A stretch of DNA of 64,000 bases. It comes from Chara braunii (lineage: Eukaryota > Plantae > Charophyceae). Positions 3,843 through 29,269 of the stretch are shown here, one piece after another. The notes under the pieces are model-generated. The model made no database searches, was not told where the DNA came from, and saw nothing but the letters and a program-made list of their open reading frames with translations. How positions within the stretch are numbered: the stretch's first letter is position 1; every line of letters starts with the position of its first letter. Made by a program: the position numbers and the translations under genes. The stretch covers positions 2,900,073 through 2,964,072 of the forward strand of contig BFEA01000021.1 of assembly GCA_003427395.1 (NCBI GenBank), in the 5' to 3' direction.

Positions 3843-4689
3843 GATCTAGTTGAATGAATTCCTGAATTTTTTTTTATTTTTTATTTTTTTACAAGTTGAA
3901 TGAATTTCTGAATTTAAATTACCTTGGCCCATCAGGTCCACGCAGATAATCCCGAGGGCGGCGTCCTTTTTCCTCTTTTCAGAGTTCAGGGCTATGACAT
4001 CTTTCATCTCTAAACCGACTACAACTTCTCTCTCTCTCTCTCTCNNNNNNNNNNNNNNNNNNNNNNNNNNNNNNNNNNNNNNNNNNNNNNNNNNNNNNNN
4101 NNNNNNNNNNNNNNNNNNNNNNNNNNNNNNNNNNNNNNNNNNNNNNNNNNNNNNNNNNNNNNNNNNNNNNNNNNNNNNNNNNNNNNNNNNNNNNNNNNNN
4201 NNNNNNNNNNNNNNNNNNNNNNNNNNNNNNNNNNNNNNNNNNNNNNNNNNNNNNNNNNNNNNNNCACAGACACCGCGCTCCTCATCCTCCCCTCTCTCCC
4301 TCCTCTCATCCTCCTCTCATGTCTTTGTCCCCTCTTTGTTTCACGTATCAGCCAAGAAGTTGCCTTTTTCTAAAAGGTCAGGGCTACGATCATTCATCTC
4401 TAAACCGACTACGACTTTGCTCTCTTCCTCTCTACTCTCACCGTTGTCCTCCTCCCCCTCTTGTCCCTCCTCTCATCATCCTCTCATGTCTTTGTCCCCT
4501 TTTTGTCCGCGTACATGGCATGGAGTTCTTCTTCCCACATTCTCGCTTCCCTCCTTGTAGCCCCTGCTATGATGACTCTGCTATGATAACCATGGTCATC
4601 ATTGCTTCCCATTCTATATACAGGGTTATCAGTCCGATTCCTTCGTCTTGGAGGATAAGAAGGTGGGGATGATGTAGGGACGACAAGAG

Positions 4690-5260
4690 GAGGAAGAGGG
4701 AGGAGAATCAGTAGCCCAGTGAGGAAGACGAGGAGGCGGCCATGCAAGAGGCGCCGCACAGAGGGAGGAGACGAGCTCGGACGACGACCAGGCGTCGCTT
4801 CTTGTGCGGCTGTGCGGCTGTGCGGCAATCCCGCCGTCCCGAGTCGCAACAGCGGCCGCACAATCCGACGTGAAAAAATCAATGGGACGTCCATTAAAAT
4901 TGAACGATACAGAGAATATTGCAGGTAACACGGCCCCACGCATAAATCGATAAAACAACAGAACGACGACGAGTAGTGCGATGTACGCTTGTCCCCTCTG
5001 GCTGTGGCAACGACGAGGGACTGTGAGGAGGAGGGGGAAGAGGAGGAGGAGGTAGAGGGGGAAGAGGAGGAGGAGGTATGGAAGGAGGAGCCTACCAGGA
5101 GGAGAATCAGTAGCCCAGTGAGGAAGACGCGGCGGCGGCCATGCAGGAGGCGCCGCAGGGAGGGAGGAGAAGTGCTCGGACGACGACCAGGCGTCGCTGC
5201 CTGTGCGGCTGTGCGGCAATCCCCCGCCGTCCCGTGTCGCACCAGAGGCCGCACAATCTG
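4690..5260. repeat. Direct duplication of ~165 bp
   Basis: About 4698-4868 matches 5098-5262 (ggaggagaatcagtagcccagtgaggaagacg...ggccgcacaatc). Confidence 0.85.
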
Positions 5261-6164
5261 ATGTATATCCTTGGGGCACGGTAGCTCAGTGGGTACAGCC
5301 ATGAACCGTTGAAATGCCCTGAGTTCTTTTTTTTTTTTTTCTTTCTTTTGAATCAAAGTCATTAGTTCATTGCCAAAGTGCAAACGAGGCCGGGGAACCT
5401 CACAACTCAGCCCGGAGTACTGACAGCATCAGCCAGCTTACAGGCAAAAGCCTGCGGAAAGTTAAGACTACCAACTTTCCAGAATCATAATATCCCGACT
5501 AAATTCTTCACCGGCTCAACTTACAGGCATAAGCCTGCGGAAAGTTAAGACTACCCACTTTCCAGAATCCTAATACTACGACTAAATTCCTCACCTTTAA
5601 AAAGACTGTCCAGTAACTTGAACCGGACACTTCCCAAAAAAAAAAAAAAAAAAAAGACTGTCCAGTAACTTGAACCCGACACTTCCAAAATACCAGTCTA
5701 GCACCCAAATCCGAAACCCGATCTCTTGAAACCATGGTAACTAGGACTACTGTAACGCCTGTCTCTGGACCTTGAACATTTGATCTTCAGAGGAACATTC
5801 CATAACTTCATGGCTGCACAACCGAGTAAAATGCCTACACTACGCTAATCCGGGACTAACGCGGCCCAGAGGACAAGAGTCCCAAACCTACCGACACTCT
5901 CCTAGTGGTCCACCGCGACCCTAGCTGGGACCGAGTGTCCTGGTCCCAGGGACTGAGTGCCCTGGTCCCCATGTCCGGTTCCCCCCTGTTGGTACTCCTC
6001 TACTGGCCCACTGCGGCCATCTGTAATCTGTTATCTGAGCTGGGTGAGCAACCGGGCCTCTATTCTACCACATGTCCTCCTCTAGCTACAGGGATGGCGA
6101 GTCCTCCCTTTCGCTGGTCCCTATCCTACTGAGCTCGGTCCCTCCAGGATCCACTTTGACAGCA

Positions 6165-14635: not shown

Positions 14636-17449
14636 ATATTTGCTATAAACTCAAAAAAAAAATTAGTCGTACTTTCACAACTCATCAGGGCGTTGCCAAT
14701 CAACAAAACGAGAACATACAATACAAAATGAAAAACAAATGGTTATTTCAAACTGCCTATATGAACGCTGCATTTAAAATGCAGCCACTCCTATGATGCA
14801 AGGAAATATTCACTGCACCCAAGTCGCAAATCTCGATCGCAAGGTGGCTCACTCTGGCACACCATCTCAAGCTGGACCAGGCCAAGAATGTGAGCTACAC
14901 ATGCGTGGTATGCCTAGTGATAGGTCATGCCTGAAAGCAGCACGTGAAGTCGGAGAACGGCTTTGATGAAGCAGAAGGTTAGGGTTAGGATAACGAACTT
15001 GATACGTGAAGTCAGTCCCATACCGGGTAATACCTTACTGTCAGCTTGAGATGGTGTGGCAGAGTTGGAGCCGCCCTGCAATCCGAGATCTGCGACCTGG
15101 GCGCACTCAATAATTCCTTGCATCGTGAAATCCATATTGCCAAGGCTCTGCAGCATCCATATAATCCCGACAATCTGCCCAGGACGCCTTTGACCAACGG
15201 ATGGATAAGGATTCACCACATCGCCCAGAGTTAGCAATAGCCATGAGAAAAGTGGTAGACTCTACTCAGAACAACCCTGCAATCCTAGCGGACTGTCGGT
15301 CCAAAGCCCTAACAAGAACAACAGTAAAAGTACGAGAACCTAATCTAACAAGAGTCATAAAACCCACCCTACACACCCACAGAGCCATGGACATCCAATG
15401 GCATGACCGCTACTATGGTCTCGACCCTCGCCACATCAATCCTCCTGAACACAGAGCCTAATGTGTGTGGAACTGCATGAACAACACAAGAAAACAAAAC
15501 AAAAGACAGCAACAAAACAGGACGGACTCGTCAGACCTACCCACATGCCAGGATCTGACAACCCTCTCTCTACACGCAGGTCAGCCGTATTGTTCCACGT
15601 CCACCATCTGGCGGACGTCGCATCAGTTGGCTGCAATTTCAGCGCGGTCTCCGTGCGTTAACACAAATATGACAACACAATCAATCATTTTTATATTTTC
15701 TTACTTGTACTTTCTCCTCGTACTGTTGTGTCCCCAGTGCCAAACAGTCCGTCCTGCCTCATTTTCGGTGGCTGGACCGCTCCGATTTTCTGCAGATGAT
15801 GACACATCTTCGCCTGATTCCGTGGCTCAGCAGGCGGTGGGATCCAGACACTGCAGTCTGCGGGATCCACTTCCGATGTATGTGATCTGCCACATTGTTC
15901 CGTGTGCCTCATCAGCAGTCCACCACCGCCGTGCTGCCCATCCGTTCACTGTCTGGTGCGGATGAGGTGGTGGCGTTACCTCCGTCTTTGCTGCCCATCC
16001 GCATGCCATACCTTCCGCCTGCCTTGCTTGGCTGCCATGCAGTTTGGCTGATTCTTCACGGTGCAGTCGCCGTGCTGCTGCTCCGCTTGCCCTGTTGTTC
16101 CTAGTGGTTTTTGGCGTGTGCAGTCGTGTTGCCTCGGCTGCGTTGCCTGGTGCTCCGCCAAGTCGCTGTCCACTGCTATGTACAGCTTGAGGACAGTCTG
16201 CCTTCAACATGGGTCAAGGGGCTCATGAGCCAAACGACAGGAGGTGAGTTTGCCAACTTGGGTGTCTCCAACCACGTGGTAGACAAAATGAGTCGCGCTC
16301 ATCTCTCTTCGACTACGGGAGCATCTGCTTCGCTATCGCACCAGAGAGAATAAACAGTGCAAAGGGGCAACAATTCATTTGGTAGTCGCGCATAAAATTA
16401 TCAATACGGGCACTCAGCAGTTTGAGAAGTGTTCCACCTCCTGATGAGTCGGTGCAATTCCAACGAAATAATCTCATTTTTTTTCGGTCCTTGCACTTCA
16501 TGTTTTTTTTTGGTCTTTGCAATTCCTGGGTTGTCAACGGTTCTGCCTTGTTTTGTATATAAACTTGTTTAAGATAGTGCTTTACCAAAAAACAAAAAAA
16601 AGGGAGTGTTATACCACCAGTACTTCCTAGAGTCAAACCCATTAATGCGCCACAATTTTAGGGAACGCACGGGCCACTACAGGAGCGCCCAAATTCATCC
16701 AACTAGAAACGTTTCTACTCTATTGTTTTCCGCGGCCGATAGCTGGGCCAAGTACTGGTGCTTAGTACCTTCCGAAGCACTCCTCCGGACCTTTTTTTTT
16801 TCAGGCTACCGAAGCTCTTTGTTTTGGTAGGAGGCAGCTGGTGAAAAACAGTGATACAACGTGCAACCAGTCCTTCGACGTCGGGCGACCAGTCGTGTTT
16901 TTTTTTTGCCCCTTCCCTTCTTTTCTTTTCTTTCTTTCTCTTTTTTTATGCCCTGAGTAAGGGAATTCCCGAGCACGTGTAATAGGAGGAAAGAAACCGA
17001 AGGAAAGAAAAAAGGATACAAATATTTGGCCGTGATAGTGGTCAGATACATGCTGGGATCGTACAAATGTGAATATTCCCTCAGTTAGGGTCTTTCTTGT
17101 GCACGTGGAATGCGCTCTACCTCGTTGACTAGGCACTAACGAAAAAAAAAAGAACAATAGATTTAGCCGTGATTGCGGTCCGATACACATTCTCTACAGT
17201 CCTAGCGTGATTATGATATCAAAGAGTTCGTGGAGCCAAAAACTTCCTGGAGAGGTGGAGAGGCAACATCTTCACACAAAGAATTCAGGACGACCAAAAA
17301 CTTGCATAGGACAAATAACAAGTCTGGATTCAAACCAAGATCAAAGAAGTCCTGGAGAGATGGAGAGACACAACATCTTCACACAAAGAAGCCAAAAACA
17401 GTTCGCAAGAGGAAAACGAAGGGAATCAATACAAATGAAAACTTCCTAA

Positions 17450-18350
17450 AAGATACACATTCTCACACAGGAGATGAGATTCCAACAAAAGCTCACATTT
17501 CCCGCCGATTTACAAAGCTCTGAATATAGGCTCTCATAGCTGTCACACATCCTCCGTGCACACACACACCATAAAATACTCTCGCAAAAACAATGCTGCC
17601 CTGTCAGAGAGCATGGTCAGGTGGTAGATAGGCCACCAAAAGCCCAAAGACTGCCACTCACAAAGTGCTGCCACACGGCACTCCTAGCCGCCCTTCATTG
17701 GCCCTTCTTCCTCTTCTCTACCTTTCCTACCAAATCAATGGAGTTTCTCAATTGATCGAGGACATCTCACCACAGAAGAAGGGAGGACTAATGCAGATTT
17801 GATTTGTAGGCTTTCACCTGAATCATTCATACTGCTCACTTCCACATGGAAATCCCGATACCCCTAGACACTCTCCTCCCTAGTACTCCTCACCCCCCCG
17901 CCCCATCATTCATATGAAGAAACACAACTGTCCATCCAGTGCACCAGCTCATGTGAGAACACAATATAACTCCCATCATTCATCCGAAGAAACACACAAC
18001 CTACGGAAAGCAAACCTCCCGAATTTCAAATCCCATTCCCGTGTTCCTTTCTGGGAAGTCTAATTCTTAACAGAACTCTAAACATGTAGGACTGCTCCCT
18101 TCAAGGCTGCTGTCCGATTACCAAGACCCACAATACCATCATTTGAAGGGTGCACGATCATTTACTTTCCCACCGAGCTGGTGATCCACATCCCCATCAT
18201 GCCCGGTGTGTCACCCCTATTGTCGTCACCTTCTTACTCTCAGTGAAGCACACCCTACAATGCTCCATTAACATCTCCTCCTCCTCCAGGCTCCGAACAT
18301 TCTTCAAGCTGAAATCAATGCACCCTACCAAAACGTATACCAGCACTGAA
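17450..18350 (-). mobile_element. Possible highly decayed LINE APE-endonuclease remnant
   Basis: KNVRSL...VCFTESK resembles the NVRGL...LQETK motifs, and a later VAYLPP resembles IYAP. There are many stops. Confidence 0.3.
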
Positions 18351-19544
18351 AACTGGGATACATGGCCAGTGTTCCTTCCATGCGTGTGCTTCTCAGCCAG
18401 ATCCACCTTCAAGCATGTTAGCTGCAGTTCGGCAGCCACGACGGGTTAGCTACAGGTCGGCAGCCACAGCATACCAGCACTGGAAAGGACGTCAAACCCA
18501 GAGACAGCGCCTCCCATAAGCGAACTCGGATCCTGTTCCCCTTGACATCAAGACAGGTCAGCTGCAGTTTAGCAGCCATCCTCAGCACCCAGAAAACACA
18601 TCCCTGTTACGCCTTGATAGACAGCAATATGACTATCACCGGACGAGTCCTCCCCCGCTCGGTAAACTCTCGTGTCCACACAAACTCCTCTCCCCTCCCC
18701 TCACCCACAAACTTCACTAGCAATAACCAGTGCACGACTTCAACTATCGAAAAACAATGCATGACCAGAGATATCACAGGATGATTTCCTGCAAGTTCAC
18801 AAGCACAACATTGTCCACATTGCCTTCCGCACCCACTACTGGAGTCTAACCTGCCCACTGCCACTCCCACCACTGGAACGCCACCCTGGCCACCGCCACA
18901 CCTAGGGTAAATACTCGTATTCGGATCCGGCATCGGAGTATGGCATGGGAGTGCTTTCATAACGGTGAACCTGCAGCACCTATATTGTCCGCAGCAAGAC
19001 TTTACCCAAGGGAGAGAGTAGGTGGCAGCAGCAAACTACAGCAGTACACTTCTACCAATAGGATTGTCGGATTGCCACACCACCAAAACCTTCTTTGATG
19101 CTTTCTCCTGCAGCATCCACAATCAAAACCCTCAAACGTCAGGCAAATCACTTCATACACAGCTTGGTCTCCACCCTGTCCTTGCAATAATGTCATCATC
19201 ACCATCTCTCAAAAGCCCAAAAGGAAAACCACAATGGTCGTTATTATAGCTGTTCATAGCACATAGCTCAGGAGACACTGCCTGCTGACAGAGCTCTCTG
19301 TTCTTCAAGTCAACCTTGAGCCTCCTCTGGGCAGCAACTGGCAGGAGCTCGATGCACGACACCATGATGAAGGCCACCATAACAGCAGCTTCAATGTGAG
19401 CAAACAAATCCCGAGCACCTTGACCTCAATTCAGCTGCTGCCACACGAAGAGCACATATCGAGCAAGACCATAACACCCGTACAATCAGTCGAGAGGGGA
19501 AACAATACTAAGACACACATCAGACAAAGAATGGGGGAACCGAT

Positions 19545-20001
19545 GCTCTGCAGACTTGCATACGAGACAAAGGAGTAAAACAGTACTCTGCAGACTTGTG
19601 CATTAGACAGAAAGGGTAAAACAGTGCTCTGCAGACTTGTACATTAGACAAGAAGGGGAAAACAATACTCTTGCAGACTTGTGCACTTGTGCATCAGACG
19701 GAAAGGGTGAAACAGTACTCTGCAGACTTGTGCACCAGACAGAAAGGGTAAAACAAGGAGGGTAAAACAGTACTCTGCAGACTTGACCATCAAAAACATA
19801 AAAGGGTAAAACAGTAATTTGCAGACTTGCACATCAGACAGAAAGCATAAAACAATACTGTGCACATTTGCACATCAGACAGAGGAAGGGGAGCAAGAAG
19901 GCNNNNNNNNNNNNNNNNNNNNNNNNNNNNNNNNNNNNNNNNNNNNNNNNNNNNNNNNNNNNNNNNNTTGCACATCAGACAGAGGAAGGGGAGCAAGAAG
20001 G
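19545..20001. repeat. ~37-bp minisatellite
   Basis: aaaacagtactctgcagacttg(t)gcatcagacagaaagggt, about 8-10 degenerate copies, spanning a gap. Confidence 0.85.
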
Positions 20002-20561
20002 CTTCTCTCATTCGTAAACACCAATCCCTACCAGAACAACGAAAAGGAACACGAAAACGAAATGATCAAAGCGAGATTACTGCCATGCATAGTAGTACAC
20101 ACACTGGTTCAATGCAGAACTGAGCATGTTCTGTCCGTCAACTGCCTCAAGCTATCTTCAGCCGCAACGGCCACATCCAGCGCAGGCCTGAATCCGCCCG
20201 GACCAGCCTGCAACCTTTTGGACAGACCTTCCCATTTGGAAAAGAACCATCAACACACGACATAATCGCTCGCTCGACCTTCAACCCCCTCTGCAATCGC
20301 TCGGCCTGTATCTTCCCGGACCAGTCTAAAACCTACCTATGCTGGACCTTAACTACGCATACACGTCCGTCAAAGCCATCATTCGACCTTCAACCCCTCT
20401 GCAATTGCCAGGTGCACGCGAATCATTTCACTTACATTACGTAGGAACCCCGTTAATGATAAGAACGACCGAATAACACAGCTACAACTTTGGAGCCGTG
20501 CTACCTCATCCTCACAAAGCGTATCCATTCTGTGCTACCTCATCCTCGCAAGCGTACACGT

Positions 20562-20591
20562 CTGTCTCTTATACACATCTAGATGTGTATA
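20562..20591. other. Nextera mate-pair junction adapter embedded in the contig
   Basis: ctgtctcttatacacatctagatgtgtata, flanked by duplicated tgtgctacctcatcctcgcaagcgtacacgt. Confidence 0.95.
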
Positions 20592-20945
20592 TCCGTTCTG
20601 TGCTACCTCATCCTCGCAAGCGTACACGTTTCCCTGCTCTTCAGCTGGCACCCTCTCAAGGATCATTCATGAGCGGAATTTCACAGCAGGGAATGGTATC
20701 ACCTCTGGCTTTGGATGTTTACTTCAATCTTCATGTCCCGCACGAAAGCCTCCGGAAGCACGGTATCAGCATTTGTATCGTCCGTCATTGCCTTGCCCAG
20801 CCAGCACACACGTGACGACGTGCCCAACCTACACCAACCTACAATCTGGCAATCGGCAACCCCACTATCACCCCCACAAATCGAGCTTGTGCAGAACACT
20901 GAACAGCACACACTCTCCCTGCATCCCAACAATCTACTACTTGCA

Positions 20946-21911
20946 CTAATCTCTGTGCAACAGACAACAGGTGTCGACAAGCAAACAACACAAACGTATA
21001 GCAGAATATCTCACCTTCAGTCGCTCTGGAGAAAGTAAGTTCAGTTTCATTTCAAAGCATTCCTTGCGTGCAATCCGTGCAGATAGCGTTCCTTGCGTGC
21101 CGTCCACAGAGGCACGCCGCCCTCTGCCTTGTGTGCAATCCGTGGAGGTAGCATTCGTTGTATGCTCTTCACAGAGGCACACAGCCCTCCGCTTTCCACA
21201 CATCGCACCAGGAGAATCATCCCCAGCACAGCGGGAACCGAGAGGTTCCTCGGGCAAGGGAGACTGCCTTCCTCCTTCCACTACCGCAGTAGTCTTTACA
21301 AGTCTTCGCGCCCATAGCACCAGATGGATCTGCTCAGCAGCCACCAGCATGCACGCCTCAGGATGAACTGCATTCCTTTTGGGGGGGAAACCCATAAGAA
21401 ACAGCAGCAATCGTACCATCCATTCGCACCGACGACGTCCACCCCTTCCATCAGTCAATCTCCATGCTTGCCACTCATTCGACCACATACAGAGTGCTGC
21501 TGCTGCAGACGGTGCAGGGTCCGCATTACCACAGGCTGTTTTTATCCAACGACACACCCGGTATTCATTCCCACCCTGAGCTGTCACACAGACCCGACAA
21601 GACAAAGGACGGAGATGGAGGAAGGATAACAACATCGACGAGCCAAAACCACAACAGCAATACGCAAAACAGCTCTCTTTCTCCTGCTGTTCCTCTACCT
21701 CCTCCTCCTCCTCTTTCTCCTTCACCTCTGCTTGCAGCTGGTCCTGCTGCTGTGCCAGTTCATCCTCAGCGGGGTGCACAAGGATGGCCGCGTACCACGG
21801 GAGGGGCGCCGTCATCATAATGGAAGCCGTCACCGTGCATTGTCTGATCTTCAAGATCAGGGCGCCCGACCCGGTGGCACGGAAAGACGACCCGGAGGTC
21901 CACCTCGAGTG
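20946..21911 (-). other. In-frame 321-codon open extension after the eRF1 UGA stop (candidate readthrough region)
   Basis: GAT TGA CAC TCG AGG TGG... reads HSRWTSGSSFRATGSGALI and continues in frame into the 302-aa ORF 20946..21854. The next in-frame stop is TAG at 20946-20948. Confidence 0.6.
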
Positions 21912-22568
21912 TCAATCACTATCTTCGACATCGTCCTCTCTGTCAGAAAATTCGTCGAAGGTCCTCATGTCCACCTGGTACCTCAGCAGGCCACCAATTC
22001 CACCAAACCCCCTACAAAATTGAGACCCCTCTTGTGACCTGTTTGTGACGAATTCCAGCGCACAGCCAAATCGTCTGTACTCTTCCGCAAACCATTCCAA
22101 TAGCGATTTCTTCTCCTGCACCTCCAACTCTGCAGCCGTTTCAGGATCACGGAAGTGGGACTGAACTCCCTCTTGGTCCTTACCCAGGTGCTTGATGATC
22201 AGCTCTCCGGTCACGGCATGCTTCAAAGTGTACCGGTTTATTTCCAGATTTTCCCAGACAATAAGAGTCTCAACGGCTCCCATTTCCAGGGCCTTAAGAG
22301 TGTCATCCACACCGAAGACGTACTTGCCGGTGTCCTGGCTGATTTCCTCGAAGTACTTTGCAATCAGCCTCTTCTCTTGAATAAACTTCACGTTCGACAG
22401 TATCTCCGCAGAGAGCTCGATCGCTTGATTAAACCCGTTCTCACCACCATAGGACACATCGACGACGTTAAGGATCTTTGTCCCGAGCCGCGGATCAAAC
22501 ATGTCCGATTGTGAAAGCTCCGTCTTGAAATCTGCAGACCCCGCCAAGATAAGCCCCGCAATATNCGG
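21912..22568 (-). CDS. eRF1: Eukaryotic peptide chain release factor 1, coding exon 2 (218 aa + TGA)
   Basis: Acceptor ttttgttcAG| then P(N)[26 protein letters not shown]...[12 protein letters not shown]...[19 protein letters not shown]...acidic tail, TGA. Splicing gives the conserved ATSQ|[10 protein letters not shown] junction and 440 aa in total. Intron 22569-27952 is GT-AG. Confidence 0.97.
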
Positions 22569-22991
22569 CTGAACAAAACGACAAACACAAACGNTAAGAA
22601 ANGGAAACAAGAGGGGGGGGGGGGGGGGGGGNAANAAAAANAAAAAGAAACGGAAACGAGGATCACAAGAGAGTATTTTAAACGAAAGGAAATAAAAAAA
22701 GAAATGGAGACGAGTAACCCAAGAGAGCATCCTAAACGAACGAACAGACAGAAACAGACCAAACCAGAATCACAGAGACGGACCAATCTAGCGTCTTCAC
22801 CTGAACAGAACAGCCCAGTCATTATAGCTGTATTCGGGGCAACTTTCAGTCTAGATACAGACAATCACCGGGCGTTCTATTCGGATATATCACAGAGACG
22901 GATCAAACGACTGTGATATGAGGAACGGACGAACCAGAAGAACATTGTAAAAGGGCGGACAGTTCACAAGCAGCACAAGTAGATGGAACGA

Positions 22992-23095
22992 CCATCTTCC
23001 TCGACATAGAACGTCAGGTCATTATCTCTGTATTTAGACTGAAAGTTGCCCCAAATACAGACATAATGACCGTACGTTCTATTCGGGGGAAAACG
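22992..23095. mobile_element. ~105-bp palindromic Tc1/mariner-type MITE (best copy; about 8 copies in window)
   Basis: atagaacgt..ggtcattat..ctgtattt-[agactgaaagttgcccc]-aaatacag..ataatgacc..acgttctat. Other copies are at about 815-931, 3085-3189, 3585-3688, 22792-22886, 23600-23690, 51858-51910 and 57430-57520. CAGT/ACTG termini are seen in some copies. Confidence 0.7.
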
Positions 23096-23951
23096 GGAGT
23101 ATCAAAGACGAGCAGACCAAGCCAAGTAAGCTGGTTAATTCAACAAACGGACATACCACACACGAACATAACAAAGAGTGGAAAGAGTACGCACAAGCCG
23201 AACGTCGTTTTCTCAGTTGAGAACAAAGTGCCGAACCGTTGCGTAACGCGTGGGTATCTACCAAACAGTTTGCGAAAAATCCCAAACAGTGTAGATACTC
23301 AATTTACTGTGACAGTCAAAGCTTTACGCGCTGTTTGATGAGGCCGCGTAGTATTCGGTAGTTGGTTAGGCAAAGAAAGGCTGACCTGATAAAGCAACTA
23401 CCGTCTTCAGACGAACACAAAGCAGCCTTACAGCGAAGATGTACAAACCAAATTTCCGGTCCGATACCGTCATAACGAGGGTGCGTTGTGTTCAGGGGGA
23501 AGATGGCCACAAACGAACCAACNCGATACCGTCATAACGAGGGTGCGTTGTGTTCAGGGGGAAGATGGCCACAAACGAACCAACGTTTCACTGAAGGCAT
23601 ATAAACCAACACGATAATTACGTCCGTATTTAGACTGACATTTCCCCAAGTACAGCTATTGCGAGCGTGCGTTTTTATTCGGGTGAAGGCGGTCACAAAA
23701 GCAGAGCATTTCTCCGACAAGAGACCGCAGCAGGGTTGTCCTCCGCTCCGCAGTCCCGCACAGACGAAAAGACCAGACGGCAACAGAGCATGCTACCTTG
23801 GTAGGACGTGGCAGTGCTTTACAGAAAAGACCATTTTTCAAAATACCGAATTAGTCAAAATTCTGACTGGCTATGAAAAGAGTTTTTTGAACACTCAATT
23901 GAGCGGTAATTTTCATGAGAATTCAACTCATCGCTCGAGGTTTTCTATGGA

Positions 23952-24070
23952 AAATTAACTGCAGCTCCTTTAAATTAACTGCAGCTCCTTTAAATTGACT
24001 GCAGCTCCTTTAAATTAACTTCAGCTCCTTTAAATTAAGTGCAGCTCCTTTAAATTAAGTGCAGCTCCTT
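23952..24070. repeat. 20-bp tandem repeat x6 in the eRF1 intron
   Basis: (taaattaactgcagctcctt)n. Confidence 0.95.
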
Positions 24071-25249
24071 ATCATACGTCGCCACCGAATGTACACGAAG
24101 GTTCTACTGTTAGTCACAGGTTTCTTTTTTTTCTTTCCCACTGATAACAGAAAAAAAAATGAACCTGAAGTGAGCCCTCCAACTCGAAATAAAGATGGCT
24201 AATCGAACCGGAGGAACAACACGAAAAAAAACACCGTAACAACTACTGAAGACGGAAATGAAGATCTTCGGGTAGCCACACTCGGAATGAAAAAGAATTG
24301 CACAAGTACAAAGGTCAGGACCCAATAGAGATTATGAAATTTTCTAGGTGAAGATGAACTCATCTCGCAACCAGGCCTATAGACATAAATGTACTGATTT
24401 CAGAAGTACACGTGCTCGACGAAACATGGCTCGTGTACTGATTTTGTGAAAAGAAGACACATTGACCGAAACATGCCGCGTTCCAATGACGCATGTGTTA
24501 GGAATAAGGACACAGTCAATAGATCGAAAATACAGAATCCCAGAGACTATTCATGGACACCCATCCTATAAATTTCCTGCGTTCGATCCCCGTTCCCGAC
24601 TCTGTTCCTTGCCGTTTTCCTCGAGCTACTAGAAGATTTCTACTCGAAGATTTCTACTAGAAGATTTCTAAAAACGACAAATATCCCCCCGCGTTGCAGA
24701 AAATCGCGAGTTGACACCTCCGGACTCTTTCGGGTTCGAGGCAACTCGCGCGCAAGCTTGGCGCGCAGTGCAGCCCATTCAGCCCCGAGCACAACTCCAC
24801 CTCCCGGATACTACAAGTCCACCTCCGGACCACAACAACAGCTGGCGGCGCCAACCAAAAGAAGAAAAAAAGTGCGTTGCTGGACTCGGAAAAGCTTGGC
24901 GCGCAGTGCAGCCCCTCGAGCCACAGGTGCACTTGTGGTTTGACGACAGTCGAGTGCCACTCTTCCCCCGAATAGAAGCTGACCGCGGTGCGCACTTCGA
25001 AGCGACGAACCGTCGAGCATATTTGAGCTGATCAGCTGTCCAGTATATCTAACGCGAGACCAGATGGTACGTGGACCGTGATACACCCGGCCGCAAGACA
25101 CCTCAACGACAATCGTCAGAGAGCGAGACCTGGTCATGGAGAATCTTCTGATAGCGAGACCACGGTGAATCTTCTGATTGCTTCCCTGAGGGGTGAACAA
25201 CACCCCTTGTGTTACCTGCGCAAAAAAAAAAAAAGAAAAAAAAAAGAGC

Positions 25250-25630
25250 CCTTGATGCTCCGATATCCGTCCGATAAGGAAGCCTAACTCTACCTAATTT
25301 GCCACACAGACAAAGGCGGCAGTCTTCACCCTACCAGGTGAACACCCGTACGTCATCGCTTTTTGATGCTCACGAGATAAGATAAGAACGCCTAGCTCTA
25401 CCTAATTAACCCCAGAGAAGGGCGTCAGCGTACACCCTACCAGATGAACACCCTGCCTAGCTCTACCTAATTAACCCCAGAGAAGGGCGTCAGCGTACAC
25501 CCTACCAGGTGAACACCCGTACGTCAGCGATTGATGCTCCGGAAATCAATCAGGTAAGGAGATCCAACTCTACCTAATTCACCTCAGAGACGGACGGTAG
25601 TATACACCCTACCAGGTGAACACCCCTAGG
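25250..25630. repeat. Modular tandem repeat x4 in the eRF1 intron
   Basis: Conserved blocks ttgatgctc, ctctacctaatt and caccctaccaggtgaacaccc are separated by variable linkers. Confidence 0.85.
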
Positions 25631-26349
25631 CAGAGTCCAGTCCCTGATCAAGAGACGTTACTTCTCCAAATCGTCCGGCACAATACGGTTGTCACAGTCA
25701 GAGATGAGATATTCTGATTACTCCTTACACAGACGTAAGTCCATTCTGAGACTTGCGCTCATCAAAACAAATATAAGAGGTAGTACAAACATTCGACCGT
25801 CTGGCGACTACAAACGCAGGATAGACAAGCAACGAAGCAAATATAAATCACGACACACTCCATACGTGAACGGCGCACATCCGGAGGCAGAACGCCTTAA
25901 GAGGAGAAAAGGATACCGTTGATACAGCAGTACAACGCCGACAGTAACACTGCCAATACGTTGACCTCTCAAAAACGCATTCATTCCGAACAAAACAAAA
26001 AAAAAACGCATTCATTATTACTATTCGAATAAGGGAAGCAATGAACAACCGAATATGCTCCACGTGTCCTCGTCCTAGAACCCGCACAGTTCGCCACGCA
26101 TTTCAACTGGCCGCTCTCCAGTCTCACCAGGGAGCTCACCGATCACCAAGCCTTCGCAGGTAACCACACGTACCTTGTCAACTTAGGAGGCGATGAGCGG
26201 AACACGGAACGCGAACGTATTCACGTGCAGACCAGATAGGAAGATCAACAAAGAAAAGAGTGCGGGATTCTATACACGAAGCGAAGAGGGAGAAAAAGAC
26301 TACGGGACTCAATACACGAAGCGAAAAACAGAAAAAACGGGAGAGGTCA

Positions 26350-26770
26350 GAGACGGAGAGCAACAAAGAAACTCACGAAGCGCGAGAACAGAGGAAAGGG
26401 AGAAGTACAGGGAGAGAAAACGTGTAGAGTCAAAATTTTGGGCGCACGAGAGAAATTAGAGAGCGCGAGAAGGCTGCAAGATGAGAGACGAAGAGCAACA
26501 AAGAAACTCACGAAGCGCGTGAACACAGGAAAAGAAAAATACAGGAAGAAAACGTGTGGGGTCTACATTTTGGGCGCGCGAGAGTTAGAATAGACAGCGC
26601 GAAAAAAGAAAAAGAAAAAAAAGAAAAAAAACAGACAGCGCGAGAAGACTGCAATGCAAGAGACGGAGACGAACAAAGAAACTCACGAAGCGCGAGAGCA
26701 CAGGAAAGAGAGAAGTAAAGCAAGGAAAAACATGTGGAGTAAAAATTTCGGCCGCGCGAGAAGGCTGCAA
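26350..26770. repeat. ~130-170-bp degenerate tandem repeat x3 in the eRF1 intron
   Basis: aacaaagaaactcacgaagcgcg...cgtgt..agt..aatttt.ggcgcgcgag...gcgagaaggctgcaa is repeated. Confidence 0.8.
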
Positions 26771-27366
26771 ACGAACACCGAGGAGGGCAAAGAGAAACAG
26801 GAGGGAATAAAGAAATCCAATCCAGAGGACAAAACCAAACACGGCTCACGACGAGGTACAGAAAGGGGTATAAAGACAATCACAAGGTGGAGAACATGGC
26901 AGCGAGACACGGCTATACGTTACGGAAAAGAACATCAAGGACGACAAACGACAAGATGAACGATAGGTATGTACAACACTCCCAATAATAGAGGGCTAAC
27001 GAGAGGATGATCAACAAGAACAGTAGAAACGAGGTACCGAGGTAAAGAAAAAGAGATCAAGGAGAGCGTATGGGAGCGAAGCGATCAGGAAGGCGTAAGC
27101 AACAAGAGTGCGCGACTTGGAGAATCCACGTCAAAGCGAACCCAATTTTTCGTGTGGATCACGCTCCCATACATAACCGACAAACAGAAAATAATAAAGC
27201 ACCACTAACCACGCAAGAGACGAAACGCATCATGGCGCTACCGAAAGCATCGCACATAGCGGCCACGCCCAACGCCAACTAAGAGCGTTAGCAGAAAACG
27301 CTTCCAAAGAGTAAGAGACCTACAACACCGCAATAAGCACAAATAGCAAACCCAACATGATACCAT

Positions 27367-27443
<77 letters not shown>

Positions 27444-27596
27444 CTAACTCTGGTTGCGGTTCACCGGGCAATTCCATAGAACATTATGTATGTGTCAGTG
27501 CGTGCATGGGGAACAAGGAAATCCAAAACTAGGGTGTTCCAATCTTGCCATCTCTCCCTCTACTGCGAAGATGCAAAGGCAAACTTGATCAAATCA

Positions 27597-27684
<88 letters not shown>

Positions 27685-27685
27685 N

Positions 27686-27744
<59 letters not shown>

Positions 27745-27783
27745 GCGCGCGCATGAGTGCTCAGGCTTTTGCTGTGTAGCTCC

Positions 27784-27825
<42 letters not shown>

Positions 27826-27952
27826 TCTCTCACTCACACACATACACACACATACACAGACACGTGCGCGCGATAGCACTTTTGCTCTGTTCGCGCAAGA
27901 ACGCGTGTCCTGGAGAGGTTTAAGGCTGCTTTCTGAGACTCCTTATACTGAC

Positions 27953-28618
27953 CTGACTCGTCGCTTGGTTGATGAAGAACTGAGTAGCGAGCTCCGCCGT
28001 TTTGCGGACGTAGTTGTGTCTCTTTTCCATTCTCAAACGGGCGAAACGCAGCGCTGATTGCCCTCCTCTTCCGTGCTTCTTCGGCAGCTCGACATTGAAT
28101 TTGTGGAGCACTTCCCTTGTGTTCCCGCTCAACGTGCCGAAAAGTGCGCCATTACCATCCATCACAATGAACCCAAACTTGTCATCGGACTCCAACAACT
28201 CGTTCAGCGCTTCCGTGTGAAACTTATTGTCACACAGATAAAGAGACGCGTTGATGGGTTTGAAAGGTTCAAAATCGATGGTGACCTTCTTCTCCTTCCC
28301 GTCGTCCGTCACAATCGTTCCAGTGTATATAACCAACCCGTTCGGCGGTACCTTATTGTACAGCTTAAGCCGTTGTTGCGCCGACGTAATTGCACCCAGG
28401 ACAGACTGCCTATTAACTCTGTTCTTGATGTTCGACGCCGTGCCAAATTCGTCACCCAACATCTTCGCTACTCGTACAATCTGGTCACGGGGCGGCATGA
28501 TCAAGGAAATCATGCTCGTCCCGTTGCCACGGGCCGATTCCAACCCTTTTATCAACTTCTTGATCTTCCATATCTGAATGTTCTTGTCGCTCTCCTCCTT
28601 CCCGTCGTGCTTATCCAT
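27953..28618 (-). CDS. eRF1: Eukaryotic peptide chain release factor 1, coding exon 1 (222 aa)
   Basis: [24 protein letters not shown]...GNGTSMISL (GTS)...[15 protein letters not shown]...YLCDNKF (YxCxxxF)...[11 protein letters not shown] (GGQ)...[12 protein letters not shown]. Ends at the phase-0 donor CAG|GTCAGT (GT at 27952-27951). Confidence 0.97.
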
Positions 28619-29269
28619 CTTCTCTACCTACCGGCTTCTCCCTCCCTCCCCTTCTGTTCGATCAGAAGACCGTCAATCAAGCTGCAAGTCAATCCTCCAA
28701 TCACCCGAACCAAGGAAGCAAGCAAAGAATCGTCAATGTGAATCAGCCAACGACCTCACAACCACCTCAGCCTCTCTGCTACTACGCTCCTGCGAGGCGC
28801 CGCAGTCGTCCTCGACACACCGTGAGCGCGCCCTGGACGTCCCGCGCCTCCACAAGAGAACGGTAATGGCGGCCTGGGCGAAAAGACAATGAAAACGCCG
28901 ACGGCGGCGCAGGTTAACCGAGAAGACAAGTCTCCCTCGAACTCCAATGGCCCGACAAATGGCCCTGATAAACGCCTAAGAATGCTGCTCCTTCCCTCCA
29001 GCTTGCGTCGCCGAACAGCTTCGGCTTGCGAAATCTGACGGTCCATATCCGTCCGTGCAAACCCCAATTGGCCATAACAGGCGTCGGATCGCCAACAAGC
29101 CATAGGGATCAGGCCGACTACCGGTAATGCCATGGCGTCCTAACCCTGCGTCAGCGCAGGCTGTGTTCCTCTTTTTTCCTGTGTTCCCCAAAAACAAACT
29201 CCAGGCTGTGTTCGTTCCACAAGACTTGAAACTCAAGTGCCACATTCTAGCCCCACATGCAAAACAGCA

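Follow-up and report, generated by a model that had tools for sequence, protein, structure and literature searches.

Control of the eukaryotic release factor eRF1 through readthrough of its own stop codon is a kind of system already known from seed plants and Neurospora. According to Nyiko et al. (2017; PMC5397192), a readthrough-NMD (RT-NMD) 3'UTR combines an NMD element with a stop codon in a readthrough context, the following stop being placed where it does not induce NMD. Experiments in Arabidopsis and Nicotiana have proven this three-part design for eRF1-1: readthrough partly rescues the eRF1-1 mRNA, and excess eRF1 suppresses readthrough. The C in position +4 is the key readthrough base, within the consensus CARYYA, and the plant eRF1-1 extension is unconserved and inactive. 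By the title of the study on it, the fungal erf1 of Neurospora crassa follows the same logic, readthrough together with 3'UTR intron-mediated NMD (Kurilla et al., 2020; PMID 32869294). Another parallel is offered by bacterial RF2, with its +1 frameshift, and by the recoded release factors of giant viruses (PMC5397192), which sense their own level via a leaky stop in their own mRNA. There recoding makes the functional protein, whereas in Chara normal termination does so and the role of recoding would be confined to protecting the mRNA. In the published view, autoregulation of eRF1 goes back to the seed-plant ancestor, with the fungal case as a parallel.

The window analysed here, 64,000 nucleotides of a Chara braunii contig, holds an eRF1 gene on its minus strand with two coding exons of 222 and 218 codons, i.e., 440 aa. 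Coding exon 1 (27953..28618, minus strand, ATG at 28618), delimited from the sequence, carries Pfam eRF1_1 and eRF1_2, is 97% identical to Chara vulgaris eRF1 and ends at a donor, CAG|GT at 27952, that is seen in the sequence. The coding-sequence intron of about 5.4 kb (22569..27952, minus strand) is predicted from its GT..AG boundaries and from the continuity of the protein with P0001/P0002. Exon 2 contributes a coding part (21915..22568, minus strand, 218 codons) that carries eRF1_2 and eRF1_3 and is 92% identical to C. vulgaris eRF1 (EukProt EP00244), which is the closest relative and the sister in the tree with support 100/100. The three Pfam domains and the 92-97% identity establish the gene as eRF1, the gene to which the RT-NMD class described above belongs. 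A poly-C run and single Ns stand at the coding-intron acceptor (22560-22650) and may break gene annotation; the window's own eRF1 protein was absent from the results of two protein searches. About 140 nt separate the eRF1 start from the end of an upstream ATG-initiated ORF of 125 codons (28756-29133, minus strand).

The eRF1 reading frame ends in TGA at 21914-21912 with C in position +4, followed by CACTCG (stop and context 21906..21914, minus strand), which makes it a candidate leaky stop. The context agrees with the seed-plant consensus CAATCA/CARYYA (PMC5397192) at 4 of 6 positions. A strictly angiosperm eRF1-1-like gene has CAATCA right after the stop, where Chara has CACTCG; by its anatomy the Chara gene appears to resemble an eRF1-1 RT-NMD 3'UTR while not being a strict eRF1-1-like gene. 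Folding of the sequence after the stop gave no robust stimulatory stem (z from -0.1 to -3.1, varying with the stretch folded). The first-pass annotation had described a TGA-C stop followed by 321 open in-frame codons to a TAG at 20946, and had called this the longest open stretch in the window apart from gap-spanning ORFs. Both statements are true of the DNA: the eRF1 frame is open for 321 codons up to TAG 20948-20946, the longest gap-free stop-to-stop run, the runner-up being 314 codons at 5428-4484.

Reads were mapped over 16300-22290 (5,991 letters), the 3' region of eRF1, using raw reads of a stranded oligo-dT RNA run (X24), contigs of two runs that we took by guess to be RNA (X8 and X12) and a DNA run (X1); X24, X8, and X12 come from three separate studies. 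Raw-read depth on the gene strand is 47-70x over 21911-21015 and is continuous with that of the adjacent coding part of exon 2 (44-57x, in the stretch up to 22290), and the first 299 stop-free codons of the frame (21015..21911, minus strand, 897 nt) form an exonic 3'UTR part of exon 2. Contigs are missing over about 21045-22290 in all three contig runs, a stretch covered by the raw reads and by a word index in which 99% of the words occur in at least 15 non-DNA runs. A repeat origin for this exon was rejected, as it is unique in the window apart from an internal duplication and its RNA depth is flat. Directly at the end of the 897 nt lies a GT..AG intron (19435..21014, minus strand) with a phase-0 donor and a NAGNAG acceptor (19435/19438). 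Fifteen raw X24 reads span the junction with GT..AG ends, 10 joining 21015 to 19434 and 5 joining it to 19437; contigs show both joints in X8 and one in X12. The joint was not found in DNA run X1, a weak control as the X1 contigs did not cover the donor side. Inside the intron, depth falls to about 5-10% of that in the exons.

When the spliced frame is read locally, the true next in-frame stop is found to be a TGA at 19426..19428 (minus strand), which lies 6 or 9 nt past the exon junction; the two acceptors, 3 nt apart, both preserve the frame and reach this same TGA (19428-19426). The spliced readthrough frame is thus 301-302 codons long and the predicted readthrough product 742 or 743 aa. 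Of the 20946-21911 stretch that the first-pass annotation wished to see confirmed as exonic, 21911-21015 is so, and the last 22 of the 321 codons together with the TAG are spliced out. The TAG at 20946 consequently falls as physiological end point, lying within the 3'UTR intron (21014..19435) and being used only in the roughly 5-10% of RNA that is unspliced; with it fall the isoform of about 762 aa and the "hydrophobic end" of the extension, which is encoded in intron sequence. The last exon (17490..19434, minus strand) adds a 3'UTR of about 1.9 kb with an RNA depth of 47-100x; its 3' end is approximate, with contigs ending at 17492-17519, and as far as about 17490 RNA mapping gave no further splice joint. 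A spliced 3'UTR intron, with junctions 21015-19434/19437 at 897 nt past the stop, and a next stop downstream of the last junction (the alternative being at most 50 nt upstream of it), are as in the RT-NMD class. [quoted passage not shown]

The openness of this frame is beyond chance, with P about 5e-6 to 2e-4. The exonic 897 nt contain 0, 15, and 11 stops in frames 0, 1, and 2, and the intron and last exon have an ordinary stop density in all frames. None of 20,000 dinucleotide and none of 5,000 trinucleotide shuffles was stop-free (Poisson estimates 5e-6 and 1.7e-4), and the absence of stops from one specific frame can alternatively be estimated as (2/3)^26 = 2.6e-5. The chance near e^-13 given earlier lies at the optimistic end of this range. 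Elsewhere in the window there is one run of at least 299 codons among 4,853 runs. This 314-codon run (4484-5428, minus strand) contains an internal repeat, has no Pfam match and is the best local example of a long frame without evident function.

For the extension a single homologue was found, P0121, an ORF of 249 aa from C. vulgaris that belongs to the same Trinity gene cluster as C. vulgaris eRF1. Its alignment spans extension residues 31-264 in a single frame, at 64% ungapped identity as against 92-97% for eRF1 between the two species, and it stays in one unbroken frame over 247 codons; codons 1-30 of the extension have no counterpart in P0121, so that the state of C. vulgaris there is presumed. 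The substitutions look like those of neutral DNA: a single nucleotide change suffices for 70 of the 84 differences, the differences have a mean BLOSUM score of -0.73 (-0.72 to -0.76 in neutral simulation) and the conservative fraction, 0.24, equals that of the simulation at about 0.2-0.25 changes per site. The simulation expects about 5 stops and has none in about 0.5% of runs; P0121 has none, a count to be read with the ascertainment that an ORF search can only retrieve an open homologue. The 5-7 gaps all keep the frame at the protein level, some of them in the GAG repeat, where short compensated shifts are possible. The comparison covers two species, C. vulgaris at the protein level only; for the latter, the context of the stop, the register of the ORF with the eRF1 stop and the position of the intron are presumed. 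Among 1.8 billion representatives searched with HMMER no credible homologue was found outside Chara, one hit being of low-complexity level (E 1e-3), nor was there a credible match in the word index, metagenome contigs, Pfam, or the ESM Atlas, in searches that took the gene and the readthrough product exon by exon and in pieces and were limited in length and coverage. AlphaFold on the two-sequence alignment gave a pLDDT of 34. The extension contains Cys-rich, poly-Glu, and moderately hydrophobic stretches; its neutral substitution spectrum and its lack of a family or outside homologue make it, like the extension of plant eRF1-1, an unconserved and motif-free one. The comparison of the two species suggests that selection removes stops and frameshifts but lets the peptide drift, and there is independent support for the proposal of the first-pass annotation that freedom from stops, not the peptide, is what is selected.

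The end of the frame appears to have a history of its own. A 65-nt tandem duplication (21062..21195, minus strand) is present as copies 21195-21127 and 21130-21062, 80% alike, and has altered the reading frame of the last 34 codons. The tail of the C. vulgaris ORF can be aligned with either copy, and its last residues, together with its stop, correspond to copy 2 read in a different frame; the stop is homologous to an out-of-frame TGA in Chara (21052..21054, minus strand) 37 nt before the donor. The simplest history would start from an ancestral single copy that ended 37 nt ahead of the junction, a layout shared with land plants, after which the duplication shifted the frame. A duplication of this kind could be tolerated, since the new frame continues for 34 codons across the junction and meets a stop immediately past it. 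The chance of such a tolerated outcome alone is about 1 in 4, and the new ending past the junction is consistent with readthrough-NMD autoregulation rather than decisive for it. Endings 37 nt before the junction (presumed for C. vulgaris) and 6-9 nt after it would both fit the 50-nt NMD rule.

It is likely, in our judgement, that the eRF1 mRNA of Chara carries an intronic RT-NMD 3'UTR by which eRF1 is autoregulated. In the proposed circuit splicing of the 3'UTR intron, as observed in RNA, puts an exon junction 897 nt past the stop, and by plant NMD rules the junction complex would render termination at the TGA NMD-inducing. The UGA-C context suggests that part of the ribosomes may read through, more of them at low eRF1. 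Given the anatomy, a readthrough ribosome would meet 299 stop-free codons, cross the junction and halt 6-9 nt past it, at a stop with no junction downstream. Its passage would remove the junction complex, the mRNA would escape NMD and more of the normal 440-aa eRF1 would be made; abundant eRF1 would suppress readthrough and lead to mRNA decay. Readthrough, NMD sensitivity, and feedback on the eRF1 level are thus predictions for Chara. The tail of 300 aa would be a by-product, and selection would act on a path to the junction free of stops and frameshifts. The equivalence to the plant and Neurospora circuits that the first-pass annotation drew is borne out for the 3'UTR intron, the next stop past the junction and the kept open frame, and has to be corrected for the end point, the isoform and the hydrophobic end.

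Several points would count against the circuit. In moss, distant junctions trigger NMD less well (PMC6009662), which may tell against a junction at 897 nt. 3'UTR junctions, not UTR length, predict NMD in moss (PMC6009662), so the 1.9 kb of UTR after the next stop would be tolerable; in tobacco and Arabidopsis long 3'UTRs likewise trigger NMD (PMC5397192) and the 1.9 kb could stay NMD-inducing. CACTCG is not the CAATCA that seed plants conserve so highly, folding gave no robust stimulatory stem, and the sampled copies of the Zygnematophyceae clade, liverwort, moss, and lycophyte have no C in +4; these points also appear to weigh against it.

Other explanations of the open frame share much of this evidence. 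It is quite unlikely that the frame is kept for its protein, as a functional C-terminally extended eRF1 of 742 aa that might be membrane-anchored or inhibitory. Such an isoform would accord with a frame open in two species, with the moderately hydrophobic segments and with Trp and Cys being kept slightly better than under neutrality (18 of 23, against about 14 +/- 2.4); it is at odds with a substitution spectrum indistinguishable from neutral, with the replacement of at least 35 C-terminal residues through a frameshift and with the failure to find a homologue outside Chara among the 1.8 billion representatives, a credible Pfam match, or an Atlas hit. The plant extension is non-functional (PMC5397192), and the fold prediction from two sequences is uninformative. 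The same lack of constraint counts against a reading in which readthrough occurs with another outcome: the tail would serve as a degron or make ribosomes stall, or the main effect of the ribosome would be to clear a long-UTR signal, so that the feedback would differ in route or sign. Hydrophobic readthrough tails are known to trigger decay in animals, and the Chara tail, with its hydrophobic, Cys-rich, and poly-Glu stretches, is much longer than land plants need (next stop 93-411 nt). That the frame ends exactly at the junction here, and presumably within 50 nt of it in C. vulgaris, is predicted by the junction model only, and an outcome of this other sort is unlikely.

A ribosome might also clear the junction complex with the main stop never being read through, if the downstream ORF were re-initiated at its own AUG (21818). 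A Met-Met pair stands at about the same place in both species and the C. vulgaris ORF was called from that Met, although a Met start is an artefact of ORF calling. Re-initiation leaves unexplained the match to the eRF1 frame, the 30 open codons before the AUG and the UGA-C (jointly about 1 in 100 by rough estimate), RNA depth is continuous from the coding sequence with no separate start, and we regard this route as distinctly improbable. Finally, a G-rich 3'UTR or a captured coding fragment may happen to be open next to an ordinary 3'UTR intron. Long open runs do occur in this genome, as the 314 codons at 5428-4484 show, the exon has 56% GC, and P0121 could be found only as an ORF. Yet the two other frames of the exon have a normal stop density (15 and 11 stops) and the shuffles keep composition; about 20% nucleotide divergence with no stop and with only frame-keeping gaps is not expected of a relic, no donor protein was found among the 1.8 billion representatives, and the gene is precisely the one known for such a design. 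Chance or a relic is accordingly very unlikely, and readthrough-NMD autoregulation is the reading we prefer.

Compared with seed-plant eRF1-1 (PMC5397192), Chara shares the eRF1 gene, the C after the stop, a spliced 3'UTR intron more than 50 nt past the stop, a next stop outside the position for junction-NMD, and an extension not conserved as protein. It differs in lineage, a charophyte alga instead of a seed plant, in context (CACTCG vs CAATCA), and in the distance from stop to junction (897 nt vs 130 nt in Arabidopsis). The next stop lies past the junction in Chara and before it in seed-plant eRF1-1, and 1.9 kb of UTR remains in Chara. Fetched plant-like loci were surveyed for their next stop; the rows are related by kinship, paralogues are sampled in part, and L062-L087, mostly at 66-73% identity and not clearly plant, were kept outside. 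In land-plant copies with C in +4 the next stop follows at 93-411 nt (median 186, n=20), in the other copies at 6-240 nt (median 51, n=23); with 903 nt Chara is at more than twice the longest surveyed plant copy. Two fern copies are, on sequence alone, candidates for an Arabidopsis-type layout with a non-CAATCA context and a GTAAGT donor-like site about 25 nt after the next stop: Ceratopteris eRF1 (L003 5315-5440; TGA-CACCTT, next stop +93, donor-like site +121) and a second fern copy (L029; TGA-CGCCAG, next stop +105, donor-like site about +133). Among the copies sampled, C in +4 is absent from two Closterium genes, one Riccia gene, one Selaginella gene, and the Sphagnum copies, as well as from RNA contigs of 4-5 further proteins of the Coleochaete/Zygnematophyceae clade. 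Selaginella eRF1 (L001 5315-5460) has a likely small 3'UTR intron 66 nt past a TAG-G stop, possibly an NMD element with no leaky context.

What is new in the present case is that the lineage is charophyte, that the frame has twice the length of that in any plant copy of the survey and that the context is not CAATCA. Paper searches gave no report on readthrough of Chara eRF1; an earlier mention of algae or ferns is possible in Fig. S10 of Nyiko et al. (2017), on evolution across Plantae. We lean, with some reserve, towards a circuit that predates land plants or arose independently in Charophyceae, and in which about 300 stop-free codons serve purely as a ribosome runway to clear an exon junction complex nearly 1 kb off; this long frame, evolving neutrally, would have no function other than being translated. 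If true, the charophyte case and the two fern copies would point to an origin in early streptophytes with several losses, or to another independent origin. The locus would then be an unusually clean natural test of the distance past a stop at which a junction still triggers NMD in the green lineage, and of whether selection can hold 300 codons open with no selection on the peptide. It also cautions against taking every long conserved ORF in a 3'UTR for a protein-coding gene.

Some features of the window concern the assembly. No Rfam family was found in the window at gathering thresholds. High-copy short repeats at 16650-16760 and 16437-16474 are abundant in DNA and also turn up in RNA, on either strand. 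At 1328-1362 and 20562-20595 the assembly contains Nextera mate-pair junction adapter sequence, the latter within the 3'UTR intron, where the DNA run skips 68 letters (20527-20596) and the stretch is therefore an assembly artefact. A 72-nt skip with non-splice ends (20545-20618), seen in three RNA runs and not in the DNA run, probably reflects variation between alleles or strains at a short tandem repeat of the intron. A gap of 65 Ns (19868-20002) is flanked by the same 35 nt on both sides, and 100 letters are false because DNA and RNA runs join 19867 to 19968. The real 3'UTR intron is about 1.41 kb long, not 1.58 kb.
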